Made by a program: the position numbers and the translations under genes | Shown here: positions 10,931-35,200 of the stretch, piece after piece | How positions within the stretch are numbered: position 1 is the first letter of the stretch | How the letters are laid out: each line of letters starts with the position of its first letter | Assembly (NCBI GenBank): GCA_950097015.1 | Contig: CATNEN010000024.1 | Location: forward strand, 4,526,001-4,590,000 | Length of the DNA: 64,000 nucleotides | Source: Macrostomum hystrix | Taxonomy: Eukaryota > Animalia > Platyhelminthes | Reading direction: 5' to 3' | The notes under the pieces: model-generated | What the model saw: only the letters and a program-made list of their open reading frames with translations | Told to the model about the DNA's origin: nothing | Databases searched by the model: none

Positions 10931-13900
10931 ATGTTTCGTCTGTTAGTACTCATGATTGCACTTGCTTTGGGTAAGTTTATCTTTCTTGACAACATTTTCT
11001 ACAGCGAACACGACAAAATGATATGATGTTTCATGGCTAAAGATGAGTAGCTAGCTATGATAAGAGGCTGTGAGATGGGTTGCTAGTTATGATAAGCAGG
11101 CTGTGAGGTGGGTTGCTAGCTATGATAAGCAGGCTGTGAGGTGAGTTGCTAGTTATGATAAGCAGGCTGTGAGGTGGGTTGCTAGCTATGATAAGCAGGC
11201 TGTGAGATGGGTTGCTAGTTATGATAAGCAGGCTGTGAGGTGGGTTGCTTGTTATGATAAGCAGGCTGTGAGGTGAGTTGCTAGTTATGATAAGCAGGCT
11301 GTGAGGTGGGTTGCTAGCTATGATAAGCAGGCTGTGAGATGGGTTGCTAGTTATGATAAGCAGGCTGTGAGGTGGGTTGCTTGTTATGATAAGCAGGCTG
11401 TGAGGTGGGTTGCTAGTTATGATAAGCAGGCTGTGAGGTGGGTTGCTAGTTATGATAAGCAGGCTGTGAGATGGGTTGCTAGTTATGATAAGAAGGCTGT
11501 GAGATGGGTTGCTTGTTATGATAAGAGGCTGTGAGGTGGGTTGCTTGTTATGATAAGCAGGCTGTGAGGTGAGTTGCTAGTTATGATAAGCAGGCTGTGA
11601 GGTGGGTTGCTAGCTATGATAAGCAGGCTGTGAGATGGGTTGCTAGTTATGATAAGCAGGCTGTGAGGTGGGTTGCTTGTTATGATAAGCAGGCTGTGAG
11701 GTGGGTTGCTAGTTATGATAAGCAGGCTGTGAGGTGGGTTGCTAGTTATGATAAGCAGGCTGTGAGATGGGTTGCTAGTTATGATAAGAAGGCTGTGAGA
11801 TGGGTTGCTTGTTATGATAAGAGGCTGTGAGATGAGTAGCTAGCTATGATAAGAGGCTGTGAGATGGGTTGCTTGTTATGATAAGCAGGCTGTGAGGTAG
11901 GTTGCTAGCTATGATAAGAAGGCTGTGAGATGGGTTGCTAGTTATGATAAGAGGCTGTGAGGTGGGTTGCTAGTTATGATAAGCAGGCTGTGAGATGGGT
12001 TGCTAGTTATGATAAGCAGGCTGTGAGGTGGGTTGCTTGTTATGATTAGAGGCTGTGAGATGGGTTGCTAGCTATGATAAGCAGGCTGTGAGGTGGGTTG
12101 CTTGTTATGATAAGAGGCTGTGAGATGGGTTGCTAGCTATGATAAGCAGGCTGTGAGGTGGGTTGCTAGCTATGATAAGCAGGCTGTGAGGTGGGTTGCT
12201 TGTTATGATAAGAGGCTGTGAGGTGGGTTGCTAGTTATGATAAGAGGCTGTGAGATGGGTTGCTAGCTATGATAAGCAGGCTGTGAGATGGGTTGCTCGT
12301 TATGATAAGAGGCTGTGAGGTGGGTTGCTAGCTATGATAAGCAGGCTGTGAGATGGGTTGCTAGCTATGATAAGCAGGCTGTGAGATGGGTTGCTAGCTA
12401 TGATAAGCAGGCTGTGAGATGGGTTGCTAGTTATGATAAGAGGCTGTGAGATGGGTTGCTAGCTATGATAAGCAGGCTGTGAGATGAGTAGCTAGCTATG
12501 ATAAGCAGGCTGTGAGATGGGTTGCTTGTTATGATAAGCAGGCTGTGAGATGGGTTGCTAGCTATGATAAGCAGGCTGTGAAGTGGGTTGCTAGCTATGA
12601 TAAGCAGGCTGTGAGATGGGTTGCTAGCTATGATAAGCAGGCTGTGAGATGGGTTGCTTGTTATGATAAGAGGCTGTGAAGTGGGTTGCTAGCTATGATA
12701 AGCAGGCTGTGAGATGATTTGCTAGCTATGATAAGCAGGCTGTGAGGTGGGTTGCTAGTTATGATAAGCAGGCTGTGAGATGGGTTGCTAGCTATGATAA
12801 GCAGGCTGTGAAGTGGGTTGCTAGCTATGATAAGCAGGCTGTGAGATGGGTTGCTTGTTATGATAAGAGGCTGTGAAGTGGGTTGCTAGCTATGATAAGC
12901 AGGCTGTGAGATGGGTTGCTTGTTATGATAAGCAGGCTATGAGATGAGTTGCTTGTTATGATAAGAGGCTGTGAGATGGGTTGCTTGTTATGATAAGAGG
13001 CTGTGAGATGGGTTGCTAGCTATGAGAAGCAGGCTGTGAGATGGGTTGCTAGCTATGATAAGCAGGCTGTGAGATGGGTTGCTTGTTACGATAAGCAGGC
13101 TGTGAGGTGGGTTGCTTGTTATGATAAGCAGGCTGTGAGATGGGTTGCTAGCTATGATAAGAAGGCTGTGAGATGGGTTGCTAGTTATGATAAGAGGCTG
13201 TGAGGTGGGTTGCTAGCTATGATAAGCAGGCTGTGAGATGGCTTGCTAGCTATGATAAGCAGGCTGTGAGATGGGTTGCTAGTTATGATAAGCAGGCTGT
13301 GAGATGGGTTGCTTGTTACGATAAGCAGGCTGTGAGGTGGGTTGCTTGTTATGATAAGCAGGCTGTGAGATGGGTTGCTAGCTATGATAAGAAGGCTGTG
13401 AGATGGGTTGCTAGTTATGATAAGAGGCTGTGAGGTGGGTTGCTAGCTATGATAAGCAGGCTGTGAGATGGCTTGCTAGCTATGATAAGCAGGCTGTGAG
13501 ATGGGTTGCTAGTTATGATAAGCAGGCTGTGAGATGGGTTGCTAGCTATGATAAGCAGGCTGTGAGGTTGGTTGCTTGTTATGATAAGCAGGCTGTGAGA
13601 TGGGTTGCTTGTTATGATAAGCAGGCAGTGAGATGGGTTGCTAGCTATGATAAGCAGGCTGTGAGATGGGTTGCTAGCTATGATAAGCAGGCTGTGAGAT
13701 GGGTTGCTAGCTATGATAAGCAGGCTGTGAGATGGGTTGCTTGTTATGATAAGCAGGCTGTGAGGTGGGTTGCTAGCTATGATAAGAAGGCTGTGAGATG
13801 GGTTGCTAGTTATGATAAGAGGCTGTGAGGTGGGTTGCTTGTTATGATAAGAAGGCTGTGAGATGGGTTGCTAGTTATGATTAGCAGGCTGTGAGGTGGG

Positions 13901-16900
13901 TTGCTAGCTATGATAAGCAGGCTGTGAGATGGGTTGCTAGCTATGATAAGAGGCTGTGGGATGGGTTGCTAGTTATGATAAGAGGCTGTGAGGTGGGTTG
14001 CTAGTTATGATAAGAGGCTGTGAGGTGGGTTGCTAGCTATGATAAGCAGGCTGTGAGGTTGGTTGCTTGTTATGATAAGCAGGCAGTGAGATGGGTTGCT
14101 AGCTATGATAAGCAGGCTGTGAGATGGGTTGCTAGTTATGATAAGAAGGCTGTGAGATGGGTTGCTTGTTATGATAAGAAGGCTGTGAGATGGGTTGCTT
14201 GTTATGATAAGCAGGCTGTGAGGTGGGTTGCTTGTTATGATAAGCAGGCTGTGAGGTGGGTTGCTAGCTATGATAAGAAGGCTGTGAGATGGGTTGCTAG
14301 TTATGATAAGAGGCTGTGAGGTGGGTTGCTAGTTATGATAAGAAGGCTGTGAGATGGGTTGCTAGTTATGATAAGCAGGCTGTGAGGTGGGTTGCTAGCT
14401 ATGATAAGCAGGCTGTGAGATGGGTTGCTAGCTATGATAAGAGGCTGTGGGATGGGTTGCTAGTTATGATAAGAGGCTGTGAGGTGGGTTGCTAGTTATG
14501 ATAAGCAGGCTGTGAGATGGGTTGCTAGTTATGATAAGCAGGCTGTGAGGTGGGTTGCTTGTTATGATAAGCAGGCTGTGAGATGGGTTGCTAGCTATGA
14601 TAAGCAGGCTGTGAGATGGGTTGCTAGCTATGATTAGAAGGCTGTGAGATGGGTTGCTAGTTATGATAAGAGGCTGTGAGGTGGGTTGCTAGCTATGATA
14701 AGCAGGCTGTGAGATGGGTTGCTAGCTATGATAAGCAGGCTGTGAGGTGGGTTGCTTGTTATGATAAGCAGGCTGTGAGATGGGTTGCTAGTTTTGATAA
14801 GAGGCTGTGAGGTGGGTTGCTAAGGAGGGTAAGAAAATGCACATCGCTCAGAAGACACTGAATTGAAGTGATTCGCTGTTTGTTGTGCAGCCGGCCTGTG
14901 CTCAGGAGCCGTTCGCTCCAGCAGCAGCAGCAGGAGCAGCTCCTACAGTCGCTCCAGCCGCTCCTACAGCGGCTCCTACCGCAGCGGGTCGAGTCGCTAC
15001 GGATCCTCGAGAGGCACTGGCTATGGCTCGCTGTCACTGCTCGTTAGCAGTCGATTCTCGTGAGACCAAATGTTCAAACTACCCTACTATGAGTAGCACA
15101 ATCAAAATATTTAAATCTCAAAAATGCTAATTGACTACGAAGTCTTTACCGTTTTTTCCTGAGGGAGCGATGGAGCTTGTAGCCCATTGGTTGGAGCTTC
15201 GGTGCAACTGAGATGTCGAGAGTTTGAATCCCAGCCTAGGGGAAACAGTTTATTAAATAAATATATCAGTGCTCAATAAGTACTACTGTGATTAGTAGAC
15301 TGACACAACCAGATTTTTAATTATTTTTAGCTACCGAGTCAACCGTCTGTCATACAGTCGCGGCATATTCTTCGCTACCTGGTCTTGGCGCAGCCGGCAC
15401 TCGGAATACTCCGACAGCTCAGCCATCTGCTTCAACGTGGTGGACAGCCTGCCGGCTGAGTACAACAGCTCAGTTGTGCAGCCATGGCTGTACAAGAGTC
15501 AACAGGTCTACGGACTCTTCGTCTGTCCCATCGACCAGGCGCGCCCTGATCGCATCTACTGCTGCGGCACCGAGGAGGCACAGAGTTGTTGCAGCTTCCT
15601 TGAGGAGTGAGCGGAAACAGCGCCAGGGTGTCAGGGAGCAGTCAGTAGGGTGTCAGGGAGCAGTCAGTAGTGTCAGGGAGCAGTCAGCAGGGTGTCAGGG
15701 AGCAGTCAGTAGTGTCAGGGAGCAGTCAGCAGGGTGTCAGGGAGCAGTCAGTAGAGTGTCAGGGAGCAGTCAGCAGGGTGTCAGGGAGCAGTCAGTAGAG
15801 TGTCAGGGAGCAGTCAGCAGGGTGTCAGGGAGCAGCCAGTAGGGTGTCAGGGTGCAGTCAGCAGGGTGTCAGGGGGCAGTCAGTAGAGTGTCAGGGAGCA
15901 GTCAGTAGAGTGTCAGGGTGTAGTCAGCAGGGTGTCAGGGAGCAGTCAGTAGGGTGTCACGGAGCAGACCAGCAGGGTTTCAGGGAGCAGTCAGTAGGGT
16001 GTCAGGGAGCAGTCAGTTGGGTGGTTTCTGGATTTTCTGTAGCAATCTGAGAAACAAGTAACATGCTAATTGTTATTCGTGCAAGAAGCCTTTCTACTTC
16101 GCAAAGCTCCATTGTTCCACTTTCGTTCTACTCGATTTCTAGTAGCGGCAAAGTGGTTGGCCTGTTTGTCGGACTCAGCATAGGACTGTTAGTGAGCGCT
16201 TTCATCGCATTCCACGTTCGGCGCTTCTACATCAGGCGGCAAAAGCTGGCGCGCAGGTGAGGGAAAATTTAGAGACGGCGAGAAAGGGAATGACAGACGG
16301 CGAGGAAGAGAATGAGAGACGGCGAGAAAGGTAATGGGAGACGGCGAGGAAGAGAATGAGAGACGGCGAGGAAGGGAATGACAGACGGCGAGGAAGAGAA
16401 TGACCGACGGTGAGTAAGGGAATGGGAGACGGCGAGAAAGGTAATGGGAGACGGCGAGGAAGAGAATGAGAGACGGCGAGGAAGGGAATGACAGACGGCG
16501 AGGAAGAGAATGACCGACGGTGAGTAAGGGAATGGGAGACGGCGAGAAAGGTAATGGGAGACGGCGAGGAAGGGAATGGGAGACGGCATGGGTGAGACGC
16601 TTAGGGATCTAATGAATGATTTCCATAGTTCTAAATTCGACCATCAAATACTGCAGTCGGCAGCAGGCCAGCAATGCAGTGATTGTCGCCCACATCGTTC
16701 CGGCGACAGCGGACGAGAGTTCGATCGCAACTGTCGTCTCATCATCGTTGACTCCAGGCCAGTCAGCGGCATCCGGTGGCGCCGAGTCGATGAGCAACAA
16801 GCCGTCGGAGCATCTGGGCGAATTCGATTACGCATTCGGGCAGCAGCAGCTGCCGCCTTTGCCGGCCTACCAGGAGTTGGTAACGCAGCCGGCCGAGCTG

Positions 16901-16966: not shown

Positions 16967-17024
16967 ATAACTCAACATATTAATAGTTTGAATGCGTGTT
17001 TTGCGTGGACGAACCGTAAAGCTC

Positions 17025-17700
17025 TAGGAATCGAAAAAACAGCAATTAGTATCGGAGATACTGTTTTAGGAATCGGAGATACAGCTCTAGGAATCGGAGA
17101 AACAGCTCAAGGAATCGGAGAAACAGCTCTAGGAATCGGAGATATAGCTCAAGGAATCGGAGAAATAGCTCTAGAAATCGGAAAAACAGCTCTAGGAATC
17201 GGAGAAAAAGCTCTAGAAATCGGAAAAACAGCTCTAGGAATCGGAGAAAAAGCTCTAGGAACCAGAGAAACAGCTCTAGGAACCAGAGAAACAGCTCTAG
17301 GAACCGGAGATACTGTTTTAGGAATCGAAGAAACATCTCTAGGAATCGGAGATACAGCTATAATAATCGGAGATACTGCTCTTGGAATCGGAGAAACAGC
17401 TCTAGGAATCGGAGATACAGCTATAGTAATCGGAGATACTGCTCTTGGAATCGGAGAAACAGCTCTAGGAATCGGAAATACAGCTATAGTAATCGGAGAT
17501 ACTGCTCTTGGAATCGGAGAAACAGCTCTAGGAATCGGAAATACAGCTCAAAGAATCGGAGATACAGCTCTAGGAATCGGAGAAACAGCTCTAGGAACCG
17601 GAGAAACAGCTCTAGGAATCGGAGATATAGCTCAAGGAATCGGAGCAACAGCTCTAGCTGCAGGAATGACATACTGAAAGGAATCGAAGATGCAACTAGG
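17025..17700. repeat. 21-bp minisatellite (GGAATCGGAGAAACAGCTCTA)n
   Basis: Tandem periodicity (GIGETAL repeat ORF) 3' of copy 3. Confidence 0.95.
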
Positions 17701-18095: not shown

Positions 18096-18688
18096 TCTAG
18101 TTTTTGAAGGTAACACAAAAAATCTTTTGAACTACTGCCAAGGTGCTAAAAGTTCAAACCTCAATGGCTTATCGTCTAGTTGACGAAGCAATTCAATTCT
18201 AGTCAATTCTCATGAGTTCGTCTCGCTTACAGATCCGAGATTGAAAGTAACAAGGCGTTGAACAATGATCAAATGCATTCAGCGCTTTCTAAGAATACGC
18301 GAAACGCGTATAGGAAATAGAAGGGCACAGGCTTTATGGACCGAATAGAAAATAGCTTTTTGGAAGATTTATTTAGGTTAAGTTTTTTATGAATGATTTT
18401 TGCAATGCGTTTAGTCTGCATGATTAGTTTTGTCAGCGCCTGAGATAACTCACAATTCACATAGGAAACACAACAAAAGCGCACTGAAAGAAAACACATT
18501 TTAAACTACTTCTAGTTTTAAGCAAGTGTGAGCAAATAGATCTGTTTGCATAGATTTTTTACAGCATGGGCAATTGACAAGCGCGATTTGAGGCGCGGAG
18601 CTGCAAAGTCATTGCCCGATAGTCTAAGAGAAGTTAAAACAGCTAACAGAAGGATGGCACACTGGAGCTTATAAAATATGTTAAAATT

Positions 18689-21600
18689 CTATTTCATATT
18701 GGCCAGTTCAAGCAAGGACATTCGGCCGTCAAGCAGCTGGTCTGCGGTGCGGACTCGCTTCAACTGCGGCTCAGAGGAGGGCACAGTGACGTCATTCTTG
18801 CCGGAGTCGACAGGCCGGCGCCTACGCTCCGGTTGGTCACCGGGCAGCAGGTGGCGATCCTCGCTGTAGGCCGGCAGACGACGCTCGGTTGACGAGGCCG
18901 CAGCGGAGCTGAGAAATCGAGACAGCACTAAGCCACGCCCCGAAACGGCCACGGGAGCCAGGCCGCCGCCGCACATTGGATCGGAGCGGACAGAAGCGGC
19001 TCCGACCAAGACGCCGCCGCTGGATGACGAGATCGTGGAATCGGCCCGCCGCTTGGCCATTACGGACCGCATGCGCGACTTCAGGCTGCTACCTTCAATG
19101 CGGCTAACAGCGCTTGCTGACGAAGTCGACGGCGGTGGCGGAGGGAGCTGGCTTGGTTGTGGAGCCGGCTGAGCGGGAAGGCCGAACAGCTCCGCTAGAA
19201 GGTCTAGCTCGTCAACGTTGGCCCCACTAGGACCCGGTGCATCCTCAACTATGTCGGCTGGCAGCGAAGAGGCAGGATCTACCAGCGGGTGTTCATCGAG
19301 GACAGGCGGCGTGGGCGGAGCGGCGGCCAAAGCTACGGCGGAGCTGCGCCCAGATCCGTCGCAGGTGAAGCTGCTAGATGGCTCTGTACGGTAGCCCAGG
19401 TTTTCAACTGCCGGACACTCCCGCTCAAACAAAATGGCGGTCAGCTGGCCGGAGCGAAAGATTGGCGACGCGGCCAAGTCGTGACAGGCCAGGCCAGGCG
19501 AGACAGCGTCGGAGCCACCGGACTCCTGACTTGGGCCGATGCGCATCCAGCGGGCATCTTTATTATTGGAGGAAGAAAGTAAAACGGAAGCGGGATGGGA
19601 AAATTAAAAGGCGATGCTTGAGTGTCTGTCAGAAGTGACTGATTGTATTAGAAGCACCTATATTAGAGACTTGCAACTGAGAATAAAATTATCAGATGAA
19701 AAATGTCTAAAATGCTTACACGGAAGGTAGAAATAGAGAGATAAGATACTTGCTTCGATAGCAGTTAAAATTTAGGTGAGGCGGCTGGCTATGTTGCAAA
19801 CTTCTTCGATCTCAAAAAACTTTTTTATATGCTAGATGTACAAGCAAGAACGCAGACAATTTACCTGTGCGCCGGCAGATGCAGATTCAAATTCAATTCC
19901 AATTGAATTCGGCTCGTAGCCGAAAGTGACTCCGCGATGGCCAGCACTTTCGGGCTTTGACTGGAAGCGCTTCGCCTCCATTGTGCCACTTTTTTATGCG
20001 CGATTTTAGTGCAATTATTTAAATAGGCGCCGATTCGATCAAAGAAAGAATGCAATATAGCCGCAAAGCCGGTCTCTTACTGCGAAGACTCGTGATTTTT
20101 CTAGCAATTTAAAAATCGTAGGCTAAGAACAGCCATACGAGTTGCAATTTGTGATCTTTTTTTGCCGTAAAGATCGGTTTCTTTAAGCTACAAGAATTTA
20201 GCAATAAATTTTTTTCTTTTAGCCGTAAAGAGGTCTGTTACGCAGTCTATTTTTTTACTTTGACTTAAGAAACTAAGGACTTTGCTATCCTAAATGCAAT
20301 GAATAAAGATTTTTATAACTCTAATCAGTTCATAAATTCATTAGCCCTAAAGACAGGTTTTAGTCCTAAAGAATTCATCTATGATCACGTAAAAATCGTT
20401 ATCTAAGCTGCAAGGACTCTATGAATGTTTTAGCCGTAAAGAGGTCGGTTTCTTACTTTTGAAGACTTTTAGCTCTAGTCGCAATTCTACAATGCCCTTA
20501 GAAAAGTGTTATTTTTACGTGAAACTTCCATCGTAAAAATAACACCTGATTGTCAATGTAGATTGCTATACATCAGAACTCTCTAACCTGTTTAGTAAGA
20601 CAGCTCGCATGCATCGATGCAGAAATCGAAAGAATTATGCTACGCATGAAAGGAATTCTGGTTTCGATTCGAAACTGGGATTTTAAAGCGAGACTAGATT
20701 CATAAACAGGACAGGAATTTCTATAGGGCTATGGATCGAGCTAAGTACTTTAGCATTAGAATTAGCTTAGATACATAAAGGAGCTGAATCAAATATATAA
20801 TATCACAAATGAAAAAGGTGGGAGGGGTAAAATAGAGAGACTAGATAAGCAAAAATGCCCATTATTGTGAAAGACAACACAGATAGAAATTGGCATTCAC
20901 ACTCCCCTAGAAAAACTTACTGTCTCGGCTGAATAGCCAAATAACATAATAAAATTGATTGTCAGGACGGGCCACTCGTTGAAGGGCCGCCGTGGGCATC
21001 AGAGAGAGGCCGTCGTGAGTGCGCAGGCTCTTCAGCGGCGTAGAGCCGTTTAGGCCGTCGCGGGCCTCTAGGAAGACGGCATCAGATAGGGGCTGGCGAC
21101 CATCTTGGGATCTGGAATGGCATGACGATAATAAAGTCAGGGCAGATGCACACACACCCGTGTGAGTGTGTGCTCTGGAGTCTGCGGAATGAGCAGAATT
21201 GCTTCTCGCTGTCTGAGGGTCTACCGTTACCAGTACCAGTGCTTATAATAATAATAACTGCAGTAGGACTAGGCAATGGCACATCATTTGGTGACGCTAG
21301 ACCCGCAGCCAGCGAGGAGGCAATTTTGCGCATTTCGCTTTGCTGACTACAGAGCACACACACACACAGGCAGACAGATACTGTAGGCAGGCACACGCTT
21401 ACACAGGTGTGTACATCTGCCCTGACTTTCTCATAGTCAGGCAGTGTGCACTCTCACTGTGCCTTGGAGTTTGACCCTAGAGCACAAGCCACCAAGCCTC
21501 CTCTCTGCGGCTGCGCCCCAAATTAATGTGATCTCGCGGAATCGAGTCAGGGATCTTGGTGCGAGAGGCAAACGCGTTAACCACTCTGCTACTCACCCCC

Positions 21601-22662
21601 GTGCCAGTGCTATATGGCAAAAAATACTTATACGAGTATACGTCAATTCACTCACTTCTCCCAGCGCAGCAGTACGCGCTGCTGTGGCGCTCGGCAATAA
21701 TGACAGGGCAGAAGAAAGACCCGCTTTGCCGGATCGTACAGATCGAAGTCTGGCGCCGGATCGCTTAAACGCAGAACGGTCGTCTTTTGCCTGCAGAAAT
21801 GACACGATAACATAGTAACAGGTTATGTTGTGAATTCGACAATTGAATATAATGCTAATTTTATCAGGCATCTAAAAACTCACCGACTGATGTGCTGCTT
21901 GAAGCACACGGTGCAAACCTGACGCAGAGTGTAAACAGACTGGAAGCGTTTAGCTAAACGTTTGTCCGATTTTAGAAGCCGGTGCAGCGTATCATAGAGA
22001 TCGTCGCGCGTATCTGACACGCTTAATGAGAGCGGCTTGGCCACAGCTCGATCTAGGACTTGCAGCTCCTTTAGTACCAGGCGCTGCACGTCGGCCAGCA
22101 TTTCTAGATTGCGAAAGCGACGCACTGGAGTGGATCGGCTACTATAGGTTTGCATCGGCTGCAGAGATGATCTGACCAGTCGCAGCGCTTTGGCGTAGGC
22201 TCGACAGCAGGCTGCTAGGGGACCTCCGGATAAGCTTCCAGAGACAACTGCTCGCTGAACTGGTCCGCAGAGTACAGCAGCTAATGCGGCAGTGGCAACA
22301 GGGCCAGCGCTATCTGGCTTAGTTAGGGTGTGAACAAAGACTTCGTCTGGCTCAATTGGCAGATGACTATCGCTACTGGATGAAGCGGTGCTGTTATCTG
22401 GGACATCGAAATCGCAAGAAATTTGCCGAGGCGATGCACTAGGACAAGCAGACAGCGGACTAGTTGGTATGTCGGTATAAGGCCGAGCCAGACAGGGTGT
22501 GGGCAGCTCAGACACCATAGGATAAAGGCATTGAGCATTCTGACACACTGGCATAGCGCGCATCCAGCCACACTGTGCTAGGCGGACTTCGCTTCCACAC
22601 AGTGGGCACACAGATGGGCATGGCTGCTGCACCTGGCTGGCATCCTCCGCACTGGTGCCCAT
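18689..22662 (-). CDS. USPL1: USPL1 (SUMO isopeptidase family, peptidase C98) homologue, apparently catalytically inactive (~657 aa, 4 coding exons)
   Basis: Exons 22662-21884, 21790-21656, 21111-20921, 19557-18689; GT-AG, phases 2,2,1, one open frame. The N-terminal CPLC...CQNAQCLYP matches the USPL1 N-terminal Cys motif. The USP-fold segments VCTVC, RQKTTVLRLSDPAPDF...PCHYCRAPQQRVLLRWEK, DGL...YYVIWL and GQLTAILFERE are collinear with human USPL1 as recalled. Confidence 0.85.
20060..20470 (+). pseudogene. cluster of five degenerate spliced-leader (SL)-like sequences, antisense in USPL1 intron 3
   Basis: GCCG(T/C)AAAG..GGT(C/T)TCTTACT..GAAGACT-like copies start at ~20060, 20164, 20222, 20344 and 20433. 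Bases 20070-20091 (CGGTCTCTTACTGCGAAGACTC) match the M. lignano SL as I recall it. The SL 3' end ATG|GT and a clean Sm site are absent. Confidence 0.55.
21130..21232 (+). mobile_element. SINE copy C (3' part, internally deleted), tail-to-tail with copy B
   Basis: AAAGTCAGGGCAGATGCACACACACCCGTGTGAGTGTGTGCTCTGGAGTC...AGAATTGCTTCTCGCTG aligns with copy A at 7045-7160. Confidence 0.75.
21244..21600 (-). mobile_element. full-length tRNA-derived SINE, copy B, in USPL1 intron 2
   Basis: Minus strand: GGGGGTGAG start, A-box TAGCAGAGTGG, B-box-like GACTCGATTCC, family body, (TTA)n tail; 11-bp target-site duplication GT(A/G)CCAGTGCT at 21233-21243 and 21601-21611. Confidence 0.88.
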
Positions 22663-23094
22663 GGCTCTGTGGGATTTTGTTAGGTTTTTGTGATAAATTG
22701 GTGCAGAATAAAATAAACACAACTGATATCTTAATTCTTGTAATAGCTTTAACATTGCTACAAAATATTAATAGATAGATATCTAAGTAATTAGATAGAC
22801 TGATGCATTTCATACCAAAGCTTTAAATAATTTAACTGTACTAACAAGAAAGATAAGGCAGTGCTCATTCAGAAATCTATGCATATTAATTTTAATATAG
22901 GATTTAGACAAAAATTGTTCCCCAAAAATATTTTAACACTTAGTTTGTCTTTTAAAATTGGCACAAAATGGTTGATTTTGAGTTGTGCACCAGCTGCAAA
23001 AAATAATTTAAATGACTAATTATGCCTTACAAGGCCTAATATCTGCACTAACAAGTCATTACAGGAATAAAGATAAATAAAAATTATATGAATA

Positions 23095-26271: not shown

Positions 26272-29200
26272 TCAGTGACAGTTCTGACACTTCGGGTGGC
26301 AGAGCTGTTTGTTAATTCGGCACCGACAGCCGGCAGATGTGTCGCCTTTGCCACCGGGACCCCAGCGGCGGCCTCGAGTAGCCCAGCAGATCTCAGTCTG
26401 GCACATTGAGCACATCAGCCAGTCGCAGCCCTCCTTCTTCTGTAGGAACACGCGGCAGTTGGGGCAGTTCATCGCTTCGCCTGACTGCACCATTTTCTGT
26501 GCGAAGATGGTGACCAAGAAATCGAAAGTCTTATTCACTTTTTAACTTTAAAGCTGCTATTCACGATGATTTAGCCTAAATCCAGCCTTACCACATCCGC
26601 CCTAGCTAAACACATCCGCCCCTAGCTACCCATATCCGCCCCTAGCTACCCGAATCCGCCCCTAGCTAACCACATCCGCCCTAGCTAAACACATCCGCCC
26701 CTAGCTACCCAAATCCGCCCTAGCTAACCACATCCGCCCCTAGCTACCCATATCCACCCCTAGCTACCCGAATCCGCCCCTAGCTAACCACATCCGCCCT
26801 AGCTAAACACATCCGCCCCGAGCTACCCATATCCGCTCCCTAGCTACCCGAATCCGCCCCTAGCTAACCACATCCGCCCTAGCTAAACACATCCGCCACT
26901 AGCTACCCAAATCCGCCCCTAGCTAACCACATCCGCCCCTAGCTACCCGAATCCGCCCCTAGCTACCCATATCCGCCCCTAGCTACCCAAATCCACAAAG
27001 CTACCCACATCCGCCCCTAGCTACCCAAATCCGCAAAGCTACCCACATCCGCCCCTAGCTACCCAAATCCGCCCCCTGAGGACTCGCCTCCAGCTTGGCC
27101 AGGGTGAGCTCGGCGGCCTTGTTATTCTGAGCGTCGCGCCTCAGCTGGTCCTGAAACAGGCGACAGCTGACGCCATTGTGGGAGGCGCGGCAGGTCACGC
27201 AGTTGTGCTCGCCGCAGCACTGGCAGAAGAAGCTGTTGACCTCTTCGGCTAGCTCAACGAAGGCCTCGCAATCGGGCGCCACACAGTGGAATGTGTTGGG
27301 AATGACTGCCTCGGCCTGGCGAAGGCCCAGACGCTGCAGACGGTCCAGCTCCGTGGATGATAGAAGCTTGGCGGCCTCGGCCTCCGTCACCGTCTGCTGG
27401 CACTGATCGTGCGGGCATCGGACAGGCAGGGTGTCGGCGTGCAGCAGGTGCTGCCGAAGGCACTCCGCGCACACCTCGTGGCCGCACTCGCGTAGCTGGA
27501 CGCCGCCGTCGCAGCCAGTCTTCACAGACACCTCAGTGATGCAGATTGGACACTGGAAATCTTGCCTAGCAGGGATTAGGGCACAGCTAGCTAAGGCCAG
27601 GTGCTCCCAGAGGTTGCGGCCACGCTGACGCTCGAGCTAGATTAGCGGTTTAGTTAGAGAAAACAACTCGGTAGAGTAGGGCCTGATTTGGTTGCTATGG
27701 TTACCGTCTTATCAGCATGCTGTTCAATTTCAATAAAATAAGATTAGGTTAAGCAAGAATTTTATAACTCTGGTTGGAACAGATGGTCACTCAGTTTATG
27801 AGCTTATTGTCTTGTGCATGCCATATCACTGAGCATGATATGTTCAGTGTTTGAAAGTCAACTTGAAGTGTTCACCAGTTGATTGTTGGTATACTAATTA
27901 ATTGATGAACCATTTAGTGAAGAACAATTGATTGGTGAACAATTGATTGATGAACCATTGAACTGATTGGTGAACAATTGATTGGTGAACAATTGATTGG
28001 TGAACAATTGATTAGTGAACAATTGAATTGATTGGTGAACAATTGATAGGTGAACAATTGATTAGTGAACAATTGAATTGATTGGTGAACAATTGATTGG
28101 TGAACAATTGATTGGTGAACAATTGATTGGTGAACAATTGATTGGTGAACAATTGATTGGTGAACAATTGATTGGTGAACAGTTGATTGGTGAACAATTG
28201 ATTGATGAACAATTGATTGGTAAACAATTGATAGATGAACAATTGATTGATGAACAATTGATTGGTGAACAATTGATTGGTGAACAATTGATTGGTGAAC
28301 AATTGATTGGTGAACAATTGATTGGTGAACAATTGAATTGATTGGTGAACAATTGATTGGTGAACAATTGAATTGATTGGTGAACAATTTAATTGATTGG
28401 TGAACAATTTAACTGATTGGTGAACAATTTATTGGTGAACAATTTATTGGTGAACAATTGGTGAAGAATTGATTAATAATCGATTCTCTGACAGTAGTTG
28501 AGGCTTTTTATTAGTTAAGAATTGTGTGAATCAGATTTGCTTGAAAACAAAGCAAGTGACATAAACAACTGTAGTATTCAAGGCTTAATTAATGACTCAA
28601 TGTCATTCATTCTTTTTATAGCAAAAGTGAACAAAAGTTAGATAAATATATATTTATATATACTATATAATCTTTCGCACAACTTATCAAATAACAAAAT
28701 GGCGCATATAATTAATGAAAGGCAACAATAGCACAAAGCACTTAATTTCATTTTCAAAAGAAAACTCGAAAATAACTGACTAATTTGCAGCAAAAAAACA
28801 AAAATAATTCCAGTGAAAACATTCTAGAGTATTATTATATCAATGGTAACCGGACCGCAAAAATTTGGGAAATTTGGGACATACTACTAATAAGTAGCCA
28901 TAGAGTATTACACGCTAGTTATGTATTTTGTTTTATTTAACTAGATATATGCATAGAAATTAAGCTGCAGGCATAATTATTAGATAATGATTGCTTAAAC
29001 ATCAAACGCGATGACTATTTTTTAAAACCAGAAAGTTTTTAAAAATAGTTTTCTTATTATAAACTAACTTAAGAAAGCTCAGCAGTAGGAAATATGTGGC
29101 GCAAATTTAATAGCTAAATAACATACAGGAAGATACATACAACTTTGTATAAGTGATAAAAGTATAATAAATGTATATTCTTATTTAACAATGCAACAAT

Positions 29201-32200
29201 AGATAATAAATTTCTGGCAGACAAAACAATTCAGGATGGGACTAACGAACCAATAAGCCATTCAATTGTAAATTTATATGCTCCATTGGCGAATCAATCC
29301 AAGATATACAGATTGATACAGATACAGTGCAGAGATGAGACACGCGAGAGATGAGACAGTGCAGAGATGAGACAGTGCAGAGATGAGACAGTGCAGAGAT
29401 GAGACACAGGAGAGATGAGACAGTGCAGAGATGAGACAGTGCAGATATGAGACAGTGCAGAGATGAGACAGTGCAGAGATGAGACAGTGCAGAGATGAGA
29501 CAGTGCAGAGATGAGACAGTGCAGAGATGAGACAGTGCAGAGATGAGACACAGGAGAGATGAGACAGTGCAGAGATGAGACAGTGCAGAGATGAGACAGT
29601 GCAGAGATGAGACAGTGCAGAGATGAGACAGGGGAGTCATGAGACAGGGGAGATGAGACAGGGGAGATGAGACAGGGGAGATGAGACAGGGGAGAGATGA
29701 GACACGGGAGGGATGAGACACGGGAGAGATGAGACACGGAAGAGATGAGACACGGGAGAGATGAGACAGGGGAGTCATGAGACAGGGGAGATGAGACAGG
29801 GGAGATGAGCCAGGGGAGAGATGAGACACGGGAGAGATAAGACAATGGAGAGATGAGACACATGAGAGATGAGACAGGGGAGAGATGAGACACGGAAGAG
29901 ATGAGACACGGGAGAGATGAGACAAGGGAGAGATGAGACACATGAGAGATGAGACACGGGAGAGATGAGACAAGGGAGAGATAAGACAGGGGAGAGATGA
30001 GACAATGGAGAGATGAGACACAGGAGAGATGAGACAGTGCAGAGATGAGACAGTGCAGAGATGAGACAGTGCAGAGATGAGACAGTGCAGAGATGAGACA
30101 GTGCAGAGATGAGACAGTGCAGAGATGAGACACAGGAGAGATGAGACAGTGCAGAGATGAGACAGTGCAGAGATGAGACAGTGCAGAGATGAGACAGTGC
30201 AGAGATGAGACAGGGGAGTCATGAGACAGGGGAGATGAGACAGGGGAGATGAGACAGGGGAGATGAGACAGGGGAGAGATGAGACACGGGAGGGATGAGA
30301 CACGGGAGAGATGAGACACGGGAGAGATGAGACACGGGAGAGATGAGACAGGGGAGTCATGAGACAGGGGAGATGAGACAGGGGAGATGAGCCAGGGGAG
30401 AGATGAGACACGGGAGAGATAAGACAATGGAGAGATGAGACACATGAGAGATGAGACAGGGGAGAGATGAGACACGGAAGAGATGAGACACGGGAGAGAT
30501 GAGACAAGGGAGAGATGAGACACATGAGAGATGAGACACGGGAGAGATGAGACAAGGGAGAGATAAGACAGGGGAGAGATGAGACAATGGAGAGATGAGA
30601 CAGGAGAGATGAGACAAGGGAGAGATGAGACAGGGGAGAGATGAGACAAGGGAGAGATAAGACTGGGGAGAGATGAGACAATGGAGAGATGAGACAGGAG
30701 AGATGAGACAAGGCAGAGATGAGACAGGGGAGAGATGAGACACGGGACAGATGAGACACTGGAGTCACTCCCAATCTCAAAGCCTAGGTAACAAACAGTA
30801 AATCTTTAACATACATTTAGAAGCCCACATTAAAGTTGAAAAATCATTCGAATTCAAATATCAATCCATCTGAGTTTAAGGCTTTATCTCATAACTCATA
30901 ATCTCATAAAGTATTGAAATAATAATAACATTTAGTCTGACGAGATCAGTCTAACAATTAAAAAGCTCTAAGCTTTTGTACTTTAGCAAGCTTAGCAACA
31001 TCAGCAGAGAATTTACTCTTACTTTGACACAAAAAACGCCAATTTTGAGGCACTGAATAATATGGGGGCAATTTTCGCAGAAAAGTCCACGACAAGAAAA
31101 ATATATGGACACTTTTCAGAGATTTTTTCACGTTGCTCGACAAACTTATAAAAGGTGCACAAAATTTAGGATAAGTGCGCTTTTAGAAGCCACAAAAACA
31201 ACACGAGTTGCAACATTAAATGTGCTTATTGTATATTTTTGAGAATCTGTACTACTTTTCACACGCTACTATTCTAATGATGCAAAAGTGAGCTGGTGAG
31301 TGTAGGGAATGAAGAGAATGAGCTGGGGAGTGTAGGGAATGAAGAGAATGAGCTGGGGAGTGTAGGGAATGAAGAGAATGAGCTGGGGAGTGTAGGGAAT
31401 GAAGAGAATGAGCTGGGGAGTGTAGGGAATGAAGAGAATGAGCTGGGGAGTGTAGGGAATGAAGAGAATGAGCTGGGGAGTGTAGGGAATGAAGAGAATG
31501 AGCTGGGGAGTGTAGGGAATGAAGGGAATGAGCTGGGGAGTGTAGGGAATTAAGGGAATGTGTAGGGAATGAAGGGAATGAGCTTTGGAGTGTAGGGGAT
31601 GAATGAAAATTAGTTGGGGCGTGCAGTGTGTTGACTTATTTTGATTTAGCTGCAGTGTGCACGGCCTGGTGTGTAGGGAATGAAAGGAATGAGCAAAAGT
31701 GAACTGAAAATGCAATTAATCTGTATTTAACAATGAAGTTATCTTTAGTGAAGTATAATACAATAAAAAGTAAAGCTGTCAAGCACGGAATCACTTTCTA
31801 TCCAGGAGATTCTGCCAGCGCTCCTGGTCTCTTTTGTTGCGAATGGCCATGGATCTAGCTCGGAGGGCGCCCATCGCTCTATCAAAGAATATGTCCTCAT
31901 GACTAGCATTGTCAAGCTTCGGTTCGGCCGTATCAGCCTTCTTATCAGCTGAATCTTCAACAGCCGCCTCGTCGTAACAGTAAGGATCCTCCATATCGTT
32001 ATAGACGTCTTCAACATCATCAGCTGTAGGAACCATCGACGGAACAATTTGAATAGGCTTCCAAGCTGGCGGAGGCAGCGAAGAAGGCGGCGATGCCGCT
32101 GATGGACGCTGCAAGGTTGGCGGAGGCAGCGAAGAAGGCGGCGATGCCGCTGATGGACGCTGCAAGGTTGGCGGAGGCAGCAAAGAAGGCGGCGATGCCG

Positions 32201-35200
32201 CTGATGGACGCTGCAAGGTTGGCGGAGGCAGCGAAGAAGGCGGCGATGCCGCTGATGGACGCTGCAAGGTTGGCGGAGGCAGCGAAGAAGGCGGCGATGC
32301 CGCTGGTGGACGCTGCAAAGTTGGCGGAGGCGGACGTGGCGGCTTTGAAAGACTCAACGCTGAGAGCATTGTGGCAGATGGTTTCGGCGGCACAGGCGGC
32401 TTTGGAGTGGACTGTTGCAGATTCGAGTTTTGCGGTAAATCATTTGGGATTTGCCTCGGCATACTCTGAGGTTGCAATGCTGGATTTGCATTTCGCTTCG
32501 GCGAATTCCGAAGACTTGCTTGTTGTGATTGCAGATTCCGTGGTGGTAATGGCGGATTCGGATTTTGCATCGGCAGATTCTGCGGCGGTAATTGTAGATT
32601 TGCGTTTCGCAATGGCAGGTTCCGTGGCGGTAATGGTGGATTTGCGTTTTGCGATGGCAGATTCCGTGGTGGTAATGGTGGATTTGCGTTTTGCGATGGC
32701 AGATTCCGTGGTGGTAATGGTGGATTTGCGTTTTGCGATGGCAGATTTTGCGGCGGTAATGGTAGATTTGCGTTCTGCGATGGCAGATTTTGCGGCGGTA
32801 ATGGTAGATTTGCGTTCTGCGATGGCAGATTTTGCGGCGGCAATGATTTCTTTAATATTTTCGACAAAAACGGCAGCTTAAAGCACGAATGAGGCTTAGT
32901 TTTCAGTGGCGGATCCAATGGTGGTACAGGCGGAAGCGGCATTTTAGATCTAGCACTGCTGCGGCCGATGCCGTTGTTGGTTGCTGTGGCTGTTGCCGCG
33001 GCAGCAACTCGTTGCTAAAAGAAGAGCATGTTTATAGCATTGCATTGTATCAGCAATAGCAGCGGCTCGGGCCTAGGTGGCACGTCTGCATAAAATTTTG
33101 ATATCAAGATTGATCAAATGTTTTCGAAAATAATTGAAGTGCATAAAAAATAATAGAACAAACTGATTTTCTCAGCAACTTGTTGATTTTATTGACAAAT
33201 AGAGCTAGGAAAAAGCTGAATTGTTTTATTGAACTGATAAATAATTTCAAAATTGGGTGCTTTGCTATTGAATTGTTGCGAATATAAATCATTATAGAAG
33301 AAATACTAGTGCTCAATATACTGGCATGCGCTAATCTAGTCAAACCAACACTATATCAACACTATATCTTCCTGAAATTCACGGGGACGAGGGAGACAGG
33401 ATTTGATGGCGGCAAAAATGAATTAACAGATAATAAACTTCATGCATTTCTAGGCAAAACTGATGTTCAACAACTATAAATCAGCAGTATTAGAAATGTT
33501 GACAAAAGCAGCAAAAAGCAAAATATTTAAACAAGACTGTACAATAACAAGTTTCTTTTTTGATCTTTCTAAATACCAACTTATCACACACCACCTTTCA
33601 TTCTTAATTTCTCCAGAATAAGAATGAGACCGAAATTAGTTTCATGATTCTCCAGAAATTCTTAAAACTTCTCTTACTGTTTAAATTTATAATCATGATC
33701 TATAATCATTTATAATTTCTGTAGGGATCATCAGTTCAAGGATTATTAAATTTGAGGATCGGAAACTGAAAGTGATTTTTCATTTTCAAAATCAGTAAGT
33801 TAGTGATAGTTCAATATGGGGATCATGAAGTTAGTGATTGTTCAATTTGGGGATCATGAAGTTAGTGATTGTTCAATTTGGGGATCATGAAGTTAGTGAT
33901 TGTTCAATTTGGGGATCATGAAGTTAGTGATTGTTCAATATGGGGATCATGAAGTTAGTGATTGTTCAATATGTGGATCATGAAGTTAGTGATTGCTAAA
34001 TATGGGGATCATGTAGTTAGTGGTTGCTAAATATGGGGATTATGAAGTTAGTGAGTGTTCAAAAAGGGGATCATGAAGTTGTGATTGTTAAAGTTGGGAA
34101 TTGTAAAACATTTCAGGGAATAAAGTTTGCACTTTTGCAGAAGTACGGAGATGCACTTAAAATTGCATATACTAAAAGTTTCCGCAAGAACAAAGGCATG
34201 AATCACGCGATGCTCACCTCTTCAAGGAATTCTTTTTCCAATCGTTCCTGCCTGGCGACAGCATCGGCAATCGGCGCCACGGGCCGATAGCCCGGGGGCG
34301 GCTCAGCGGAGCACATCTCGCAGCCGAGCCTTGTGGGCTCATTCAAAAAGGTGCAGACGGAGCAGACCCAGCCGGCTGGCGGCGCCGACTCAGGCAGCGA
34401 AGTTGGCAACTGCCGCTGCCACCGATGCTGAAGTGTTTTATTCGAGTTCTATAAAATATTTCTGACATTGTTGCTAGCCAGATAAACGAAGAGACAGCAG
34501 CCAGATCATTTAGAAATTCAATCGTTAAGACAAGACAGACATCGGCACACATCCTAGATCCTTCAATCCGTCCGTCATCGGATCCTTCAAGGCATCAGCA
34601 ATTGGCACACCTCCCAGATCCTTCAAGGCATCAGCAATCGACACACCTCCCAGATCCTTCAAGGGACACACCTCCCAGATCCTTCAAGGGACACACCTCC
34701 CAGATCCTTCAAGCGACACACCTCCCAGATCCTTCAAGGGACACACCTCCCAGATCCTTCAAGCGACACACCTCCCAGATCCTTCAAGGGACACACCTCC
34801 CAGATTCTTCAAGCGACACACCTCCCAGATCCTTCAAGGGAAACACCTCCCAGATCCTTCAATAAAATAGTTCTAAACAAGAAGACCCACCGGTTGGCTA
34901 TTCTGCCATGCGCACGGACCAGCAACCAGCTGCCAGTCGTCATATGAGTTCATTTCGTCAACTCCGCCCGTTGCCGAATTATTCCGCTGCAGGTGCAGTC
35001 TTCCGAGTTGACCGCGCGCTGCCTCCTTGAGTCGTCGCAGTTCGTCAGGCGGCGGTCGCCAGTCGGTGAAGGAGCGCACATATACTCTAATAGGCAGCGG
35101 CGATGGTGCAGCAGCCAGTGGGGTATCGTCTGGCGGAGCCTCCTGGCCAACTATGCAAGTCTGCAAATGTGTCGGTATATCGAATCGCAGCAGTAATTCG

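Follow-up and report, generated by a model that had tools for sequence, protein, structure and literature searches.

Human USPL1 is a protein of about 1,090 amino acid residues (aa). It is a SUMO isopeptidase of MEROPS family C98, represented in Pfam by Peptidase_C98 (PF15499) and in the PDB by the structures 7zju, 7zjv and 7p99. Its essential role is independent of catalysis (PMC10919355, PMC3937775), and the protein is located in Cajal bodies and interacts with little elongation complex components (PMC10919355, PMC3937775, PMC4281951). The catalytic triad consists of Cys236, which starts helix alpha-1, and of His456 and Asp472 on strands beta-9 and beta-10, while the C-terminal tail of SUMO is contacted by His421, Tyr451 and Phe457 (PMC8983731). 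In the literature that we searched, neither a flatworm USPL1 nor a natural pseudo-USPL1 was found. Here we analyze a gene on the minus strand (22662 to 18689) of a 64,000-nucleotide (nt) stretch of the genome of the flatworm Macrostomum hystrix (contig CATNEN010000024.1, positions 4,526,001 to 4,590,000; hereafter referred to as the window). We consider it probable that this is an expressed, spliced leader (SL) trans-spliced gene encoding a very divergent protein of the USPL1 lineage (C98, USP fold) without any of the three catalytic residues.

Other USP-family proteins are known as pseudo-deubiquitinases, such as USP39/Sad1 in the small nuclear ribonucleoprotein (snRNP) assembly called tri-snRNP, and PAN2/USP52. 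The group has been reviewed (PMC10919355). Their domain functions as a binding or scaffold module, the known cases residing in RNA-processing machines. The M. hystrix protein resembles them in that a USP-type domain has remained under selection after catalytic loss, and differs from them in its probable membership of the SUMO-specific USPL1 branch and in the disappearance of all three triad residues, in two paralogue lines.

Gene structure and relatives in Macrostomum

Joining the minus-strand segments 22662-21884, 21790-21656, 21111-20921 and 19557-18689 gives 1974 nt, or 657 codons plus a stop codon. All three introns begin with GT (donors GTGAGT, GTGAGT and GTAAGT) and end with AG, in agreement with the uninterrupted four-exon frame of about 657 residues reported in an earlier note, which had been made from the letters of the window alone; the window motifs quoted there were also located, at the positions that follow. 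Exon 1 (21884-22662; aa 1-259 plus 2 nt) encodes an N-terminal Cys-rich motif, a linker, a degenerate Cys-box, a helical thumb-like part and the first zinc CxxC pair (C250/C253; 21904-21915). The second pair (C289/C292; 21694-21705) is encoded by exon 2 (21656-21790; aa 260-304), and exon 3 (20921-21111; aa 305-368) ends in a degenerate His-box, FYYVIW (aa 358-363; 20937-20954). Exon 4 (18689-19557; aa 369-657 plus the stop codon) encodes the last USP-like strands (RWMRIGP and QLTAILFERE), including the degenerate Asp-box WMRIGP (aa 372-377; 19532-19549), and then a low-complexity tail.

A word search with exon 1 returned three proteins. P0001 derives from a Logan transcript of another Macrostomum species; its identity to exon 1 was 73% in BLAST, and 78% when the aligned exons 1-3 were taken together. 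P0002 and P0003, both from M. lignano, show 68% identity to the exon 1 query. The corresponding M. lignano locus (L001; NIVC01000837.1) contains four matching exons with equal phases, the junction codon AAT and an open frame of 638 codons. Word searches for full-length orthologues yielded truncated models only, and exact look-ups of the exon 4 product gave no record; a cluster look-up retrieved the UniProt M. lignano models P0008 and P0011, in which exons 3 and 4 are joined exactly as modelled here. P0011 is devoid of exon 2, hence of the second CxxC pair, and may be an isoform or an annotation artefact.

Searched exhaustively with a family profile in HMMER, a set of 1.84 billion representative proteins yielded P0001 and just one further protein, P0004. 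The latter represents a second M. lignano paralogue (paralogue B, as opposed to the orthologous paralogue A), with 31% identity, whose full form is the 602-aa P0005. At least three near-identical proteins of this type are annotated on different M. lignano contigs. P0005 has introns where the window gene has introns 1 and 3, and it is annotated as one contiguous protein. In P0004 itself, the N-terminus is missing, as are 69 aa of exon 1 containing the first CxxC, which again may reflect an isoform or an annotation artefact. Two MAFFT alignments (A2 and A4) misplaced pieces of exon 4 and were left out of the inferences below.

The N-terminal Cys-rich motif (aa 15-49; 22516-22620), as delimited in the family alignment, keeps C19, C22, C31, C40 and C45 in both paralogue groups. 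Pfam gave weak zinc-ribbon matches only, and an ESM Atlas search with aa 1-66 returned nothing. The motif is conserved within Macrostomum, and its resemblance (CPxC ... CxxxQC[IL]YP) to the N-terminus of human USPL1 is a presumed one.

Probable kinship with USPL1

PF15499 was the sole protease family matched by any member of the flatworm family. P0001 scored 29.4 bits (E 8e-7) against the Pfam cut-off of 27, whereas P0003 (21.1 bits), P0008 (20-21.7 bits) and P0005 (17.7-18.1 bits) scored below it. These matches were all confined to profile positions ~69-202 of 272, which comprise the end of the thumb and the zinc fingers; unlike in human USPL1, nothing matched the Cys-box part or the C-terminal part of the profile, and the Cys-box position (aa 113-130) lies outside every match. 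In a phmmer search of the PDB with residues 180-374 of P0001, human USPL1 (7zju and 7p99) came out on top, with an E value of only 0.7-1; the similarity is not significant by HMMER.

The phmmer alignment places both CxxC pairs and the His-box strand in register with human USPL1. Through P0001, C250/C253 align to human C361/C364, and C289/C292 to the second human pair. All four cysteines are invariant in the family, as expected from the statement in the earlier note that the zinc-binding residues had been kept, and the human strings given there at the zinc cysteines and at NNHFITW agree with the human sequence in the PDB alignment. For the human Cys-box, the WLECDD string and the human N-terminal Cys motif, the comparison is a presumed one, guided by residue numbering. 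The flatworm protein shares with human USPL1 a compact spacing ahead of the His-box, the distance from the 'DGL' turn being 35 residues (Gly324-Tyr359) vs 31 (Gly425-His456) in human, a comparison of spacing only. In both proteins, an N-terminal region precedes the domain and a long, probably disordered tail follows it, but the flatworm protein is ~40% shorter. Searched at E values up to 10, neither exon 4 nor the full-length P0008 gave a Pfam match to DUF4650 (PF15509), which is C-terminal in vertebrate USPL1.

As for the fold, a low-confidence ESM Atlas model of P0005 retrieved USP-fold clusters only, two USPL1 clusters included, with template-modelling (TM) scores of ~0.5 over residues ~100-430. 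The language-model neighbours of both paralogues were likewise USP/UCH clusters.

Several results weigh against the assignment to USPL1. P0001 is the one orthologue that exceeds the Pfam threshold, and the exon pieces of the window, scanned one at a time, had no Pfam or PDB match. Family profiles searched against the PDB at E values up to 10 did not retrieve USPL1. The search of 1.84 billion proteins revealed no relatives outside Macrostomum, although it is uninformative about an intact paralogue, since a canonical USPL1 would score under its threshold. Two AlphaFold2 runs on shallow family alignments gave predicted local distance difference test (pLDDT) values of 36 and 35 and did not bear out the claim that the fold had been kept.

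These results leave some room for a degenerate USP-fold pseudo-enzyme that descends from another ubiquitin-specific protease and matches PF15499 through shared zinc-ribbon fingers. The low, mid-profile Pfam scores, the language-model neighbours (mostly generic UCH/USP clusters), the PDB profile searches that miss USPL1 and the undetected DUF4650 would all fit such an origin. However, the generic USP families PF00443 and PF13423 were never matched by any family member at E values up to 10, vs PF15499 in four proteins of two paralogue groups; the best PDB sequence match is USPL1; and the short spacing from 'DGL' to the His-box fits a palm without the two blocking loops that ubiquitin-specific USPs have. 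We regard an origin outside USPL1 as improbable. The domain very likely has a USP fold and, given that fold, likely belongs to the USPL1 lineage; kinship with USPL1 as a whole is moderately supported.

Loss of the catalytic triad

In the flatworm protein, Gly/Pro, Tyr (or Gln) and Gly replace Cys236, His456 and Asp472 of human USPL1. The degenerate Cys-box position (aa 113-130; 22273-22326) reads LTKPDSAGPVATAALAAV. Low-confidence models place the start of the first helix at Gly120/Pro121, and no Cys is found in the orthologues within aa 113-131, up to and at the start of this predicted helix. At the His-box, the human sequence reads QYRANNHFITWILDADG and the window sequence RVARPDNQFYYVIWLFSRD; human His456 lands on Tyr359 when the alignment is anchored at the Trp, or on Gln357 with the two-residue gap introduced by HMMER. 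This position has no His in the window protein or the M. lignano orthologue and has Asp or Cys in paralogue B. Asp472 lies 16 residues past His456 and presumably four residues beyond the second Trp. Its counterpart in the family alignment is Gly376, with Ser in paralogue B, and that alignment has no conserved acidic residue in this place or its vicinity. M. lignano paralogue B is thus likewise without the triad. The loss of Cys, His and Asp put forward in the earlier note therefore stands, and at the level of sequence we consider it solid. Because paralogue B is equally dead, the loss is old: it came before paralogues A and B arose by duplication and before the two species split (synonymous divergence, dS, ~1.3-1.5).

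The cysteines conserved among the window protein and M. lignano paralogues A and B are those at positions 19, 22, 31, 40, 45, 132, 250, 253, 289 and 292. Cys132 is the only one of the domain that is not a zinc ligand, and might be thought to sustain a protease that is still active on other residues. We consider this very improbable: Cys132 is not at the start of the first helix but 12 residues further on, within or behind it, no acidic residue is conserved near the Asp position, and the same three proteins have no conserved His within the domain, the sole conserved His of the whole protein being His604 in the tail.

On the weak alignment of P0001 with human USPL1, Glu320 and Arg350 take the places of the SUMO-tail contacts His421 and Tyr451, and the counterpart of Phe457 is Phe358 or Tyr360; two contacts in the thumb, Arg324 and Phe335, lie outside the alignable part. 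Since Glu and Arg replace two of the tail contacts, retention of the SUMO groove is not supported on this alignment, and neither is the SUMO-binding module that the earlier note had proposed.

Purifying selection on the whole frame

We compared the window with M. lignano for the ratio of nonsynonymous to synonymous substitution rates (dN/dS). Over all 608 aligned codons, dN was 0.245 and dS 1.46, giving a dN/dS of 0.17 (bootstrap 95% 0.12-0.22). Similar values were obtained for the domain (aa 100-420; 0.17), the tail (aa 421-657; 0.18) and exon 4 alone (0.20; bootstrap 95% 0.12-0.30). Against the third species, exons 1-3 gave 0.13. Evolution of the frame is not neutral, the upper bootstrap bound being 0.22 overall; the entire frame, including exon 4, is under purifying selection. 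The low ratio within exon 4 also means that this exon is coding in the modelled frame. Blocks of the exon 4 tail conserved in M. lignano are DELDLLxELFG, RSVMAKRRADS, VLSRFLSSAA, RRLPAYSEDRHLL, EPQLKRVRTA and SLLELA; their conservation in paralogue B is partial only.

A decaying pseudogene whose frame is open by chance might be suspected from the missing catalytic residues and from the retained intron with a premature stop described below. The 657 open codons, the dN/dS of 0.17 at a dS of ~1.3-1.5, splice sites conserved in two to three species, RNA that is spliced and SL trans-spliced, and a second paralogue, just as dead, of which M. lignano maintains several copies, make this explanation negligible in our view.

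We therefore favor a maintained pseudo-enzyme as the best reading, because the family matches USPL1, no triad residue can be placed and the whole frame is under purifying selection. From the proposal of the earlier note, a pseudo-enzyme kept as a SUMO-binding or scaffold module, the maintained pseudo-enzyme is retained and SUMO binding is not.

Expression and the retained third intron

RNA data consisted of contigs from three transcriptome-like runs of one study (X4, X5 and X7), with few or no differences from the window. Introns 1 (93 nt) and 2 (544 nt) were spliced out in these contigs, which contain the joints 21883|21789 between exons 1 and 2 and 21656|21111 between exons 2 and 3. Ahead of position 22667, contigs of all three runs carry 23 letters that are not genomic. 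The orthologous Logan transcript L003 opens with ATTGCATG followed by AGCCATGG; ATTGCATG is the 3' end of the Macrostomum spliced leader (PMC8629364), and the window reads CACAG|AGCCATGG at this place. The mRNA is therefore SL trans-spliced 4 bases upstream of the start codon, at a minus-strand element (22663-22668) made up of the acceptor AG (22668-22667) and a 4-nt 5' untranslated region, AGCC.

Intron 3 (19558-20920; 1363 nt) is mostly retained in the RNA contigs. Its donor, ACA|GTAAGT, is kept across three species. Exon 3 runs unspliced into the intron, unbroken from 21111 as far as 19865 (X4 and X5) or 20233 (X7), and read-through adds SKFF after SRD before a stop, that is, translation stops after four codons. 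Transcript-derived models in three species read equally into intron 3: P0001, P0002, P0003 and P0007 all stop there, the first three of them 4 to 7 codons inside the intron. A shorter, alternative intron of 307 nt (19558-19864) uses the donor CACAG|GTAAAT at 19865/19864 and the exon 4 acceptor, its joint 19557|19865 being covered at a depth of 30 vs 35 for the unspliced contig, or roughly half of the depth. In this splice form, stops just upstream close the conserved frame, and exon 4 is joined out of frame. Exon 4 is covered by RNA contigs to about 18383 or beyond. The dominant RNA would encode a 372-aa protein without the last domain strands and the tail, or would be held back or degraded.

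A 77-aa open reading frame starts upstream of exon 4, at 19981, and passes via the 307-nt intron to overlap Met373 out of frame.

Could the locus mainly or only make two products? These would be the 372-aa read-through protein, comprising the Cys motif, thumb, zinc fingers and a shortened palm, and a 285-aa protein starting at Met373 on a transcript of its own; the 657-aa frame would in that case exist as a conceptual join, or represent a gene that is splitting up. The joint between exons 3 and 4 (20921|19557) is absent among the joints listed for the three runs, all of which have contigs unspliced beyond 20921; the X7 contigs break within intron 3, at 20188/20233; and the transcript-based NCBI annotation of M. 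lignano divides the locus between a protein encoded by exons 1-3 and a second gene, P0006, for exon 4. Together with the models ending in intron 3, these findings speak for two products and against a single protein. However, contigs lose rare variants, and the joint may exist at a low level as a minor spliced form. Moreover, the start of exon 4 (RWMRxGP ... ILFERE) resembles the last USP strands and is kept in the contiguous paralogue B; the species agree in donor, acceptor, phase and junction codon; and a second product from the 19865|19557 splice would face the closed frame and out-of-frame AUGs ahead of Met373. Two separate products are, in our estimation, a minority possibility that deserves consideration. 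The selection on exon 4, the conserved donor, acceptor and phase and the contiguity of paralogue B at this point argue that the 657-aa protein is made nevertheless. The 'intact' reading frame of the earlier note accordingly needs a qualification: the frame is open, but it requires an exon 3-4 splice that is not seen in the RNA contigs.

We separately considered, and rejected, that exon 4 starts in the manner of an operon gene or by SL trans-splicing, as every such arrangement puts out-of-frame AUGs or stops before the conserved frame.

Intron 2 contains a repeat (21283-21596) with an RNA depth of up to ~10,000 vs ~50 for the gene, to which many contigs from other copies attach in various places. 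By eye, the minus strand of the repeat resembles a tRNA; ARAGORN and Rfam gave no match to it, and nothing relevant over 18300-23000.

An antisense spliced-leader array in intron 3

Intron 3 contains, on the plus strand and hence antisense to the gene, an array (20055-20470) of about 5 copies of the SL RNA 5' end (GCCGTAAAG followed by CGGTCTCTTACTG). In the best copy (20058-20091), the SL core is matched at 22 of 22 positions at 20070 and is preceded by GCCGCAAAG, which, apart from one change, equals the published consensus for the SL 5' end (PMC5173321). A 44-nt block around this copy is the only part of intron 3 that can be aligned with M. lignano, at 86% identity. The M. lignano intron (L001:12526-14012, minus strand) contains 23 exact GCCGTAAAG units, mostly ~45 nt apart and also antisense to the gene. 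No such unit was found in the rest of the 64-kb window, in the rest of L001 or at the paralogue B locus (L002). The occurrence of antisense SL copies in both species indicates that the retained intron displays a conserved array complementary to SL RNA. We know of no precedent for a retained intron with a conserved antisense array of SL 5'-end copies.

The situation recalls detained or regulated retained introns in that one specific intron with a premature stop persists in otherwise spliced, SL-capped transcripts; it differs from them in the conserved antisense SL-copy array, and regulation here is a conjecture. Under the reading of a maintained pseudo-enzyme, the full 657-aa protein would come from a minority of transcripts that remove intron 3, whose removal would then be a regulated step. 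Pairing of SL RNA or the SL snRNP with the array could control this removal, as could the 5'-splice-site-like GUAAGAG that arises in its complement, and this would set the amount of full-length pseudo-USPL1. That intron 3 acts in this way as a sensor is a speculative idea to which we give little credence. If it were true and the protein promoted transcription of SL and snRNA genes, a feedback loop would run from the supply of SL RNA to its own transcription factor.

Possible role of the protein

Human USPL1 is essential, yet its loss is rescued by a catalytically dead mutant. The Macrostomum gene would amount to a natural experiment, in which evolution eliminated every residue of the triad while the gene persisted, in two paralogue lines, under clear purifying selection; it suggests that what is conserved can be the non-catalytic role. 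By analogy with what human USPL1 does, independently of catalysis, in Cajal bodies and for the transcription of snRNA genes, the flatworm protein may act without catalysis as a nuclear scaffold or adaptor, and the basic KRVR and RRRR stretches of the exon 4 tail fit a nuclear protein. A link to the demand for SL snRNA is conjectural, with the conserved retained intron and its anti-SL repeats as a possible regulatory connection. Macrostomum has abundant SL RNA and is tractable by RNA interference and transgenesis.

Neighbouring gene and repeats

Upstream, the next gene in the same orientation encodes an E3 ligase of the RBR/IBR type (27055-27531 and 31791-32942, minus strand). M. lignano carries the same neighbour, at L001:1-3926, and the gene pair is therefore syntenic. 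Long tandem repeats at 13430-14319, 16988-17677 and 27914-31715 give rise to spurious open frames on both strands, with repeat units such as VRWVASYDKQA and ALGIGETA.

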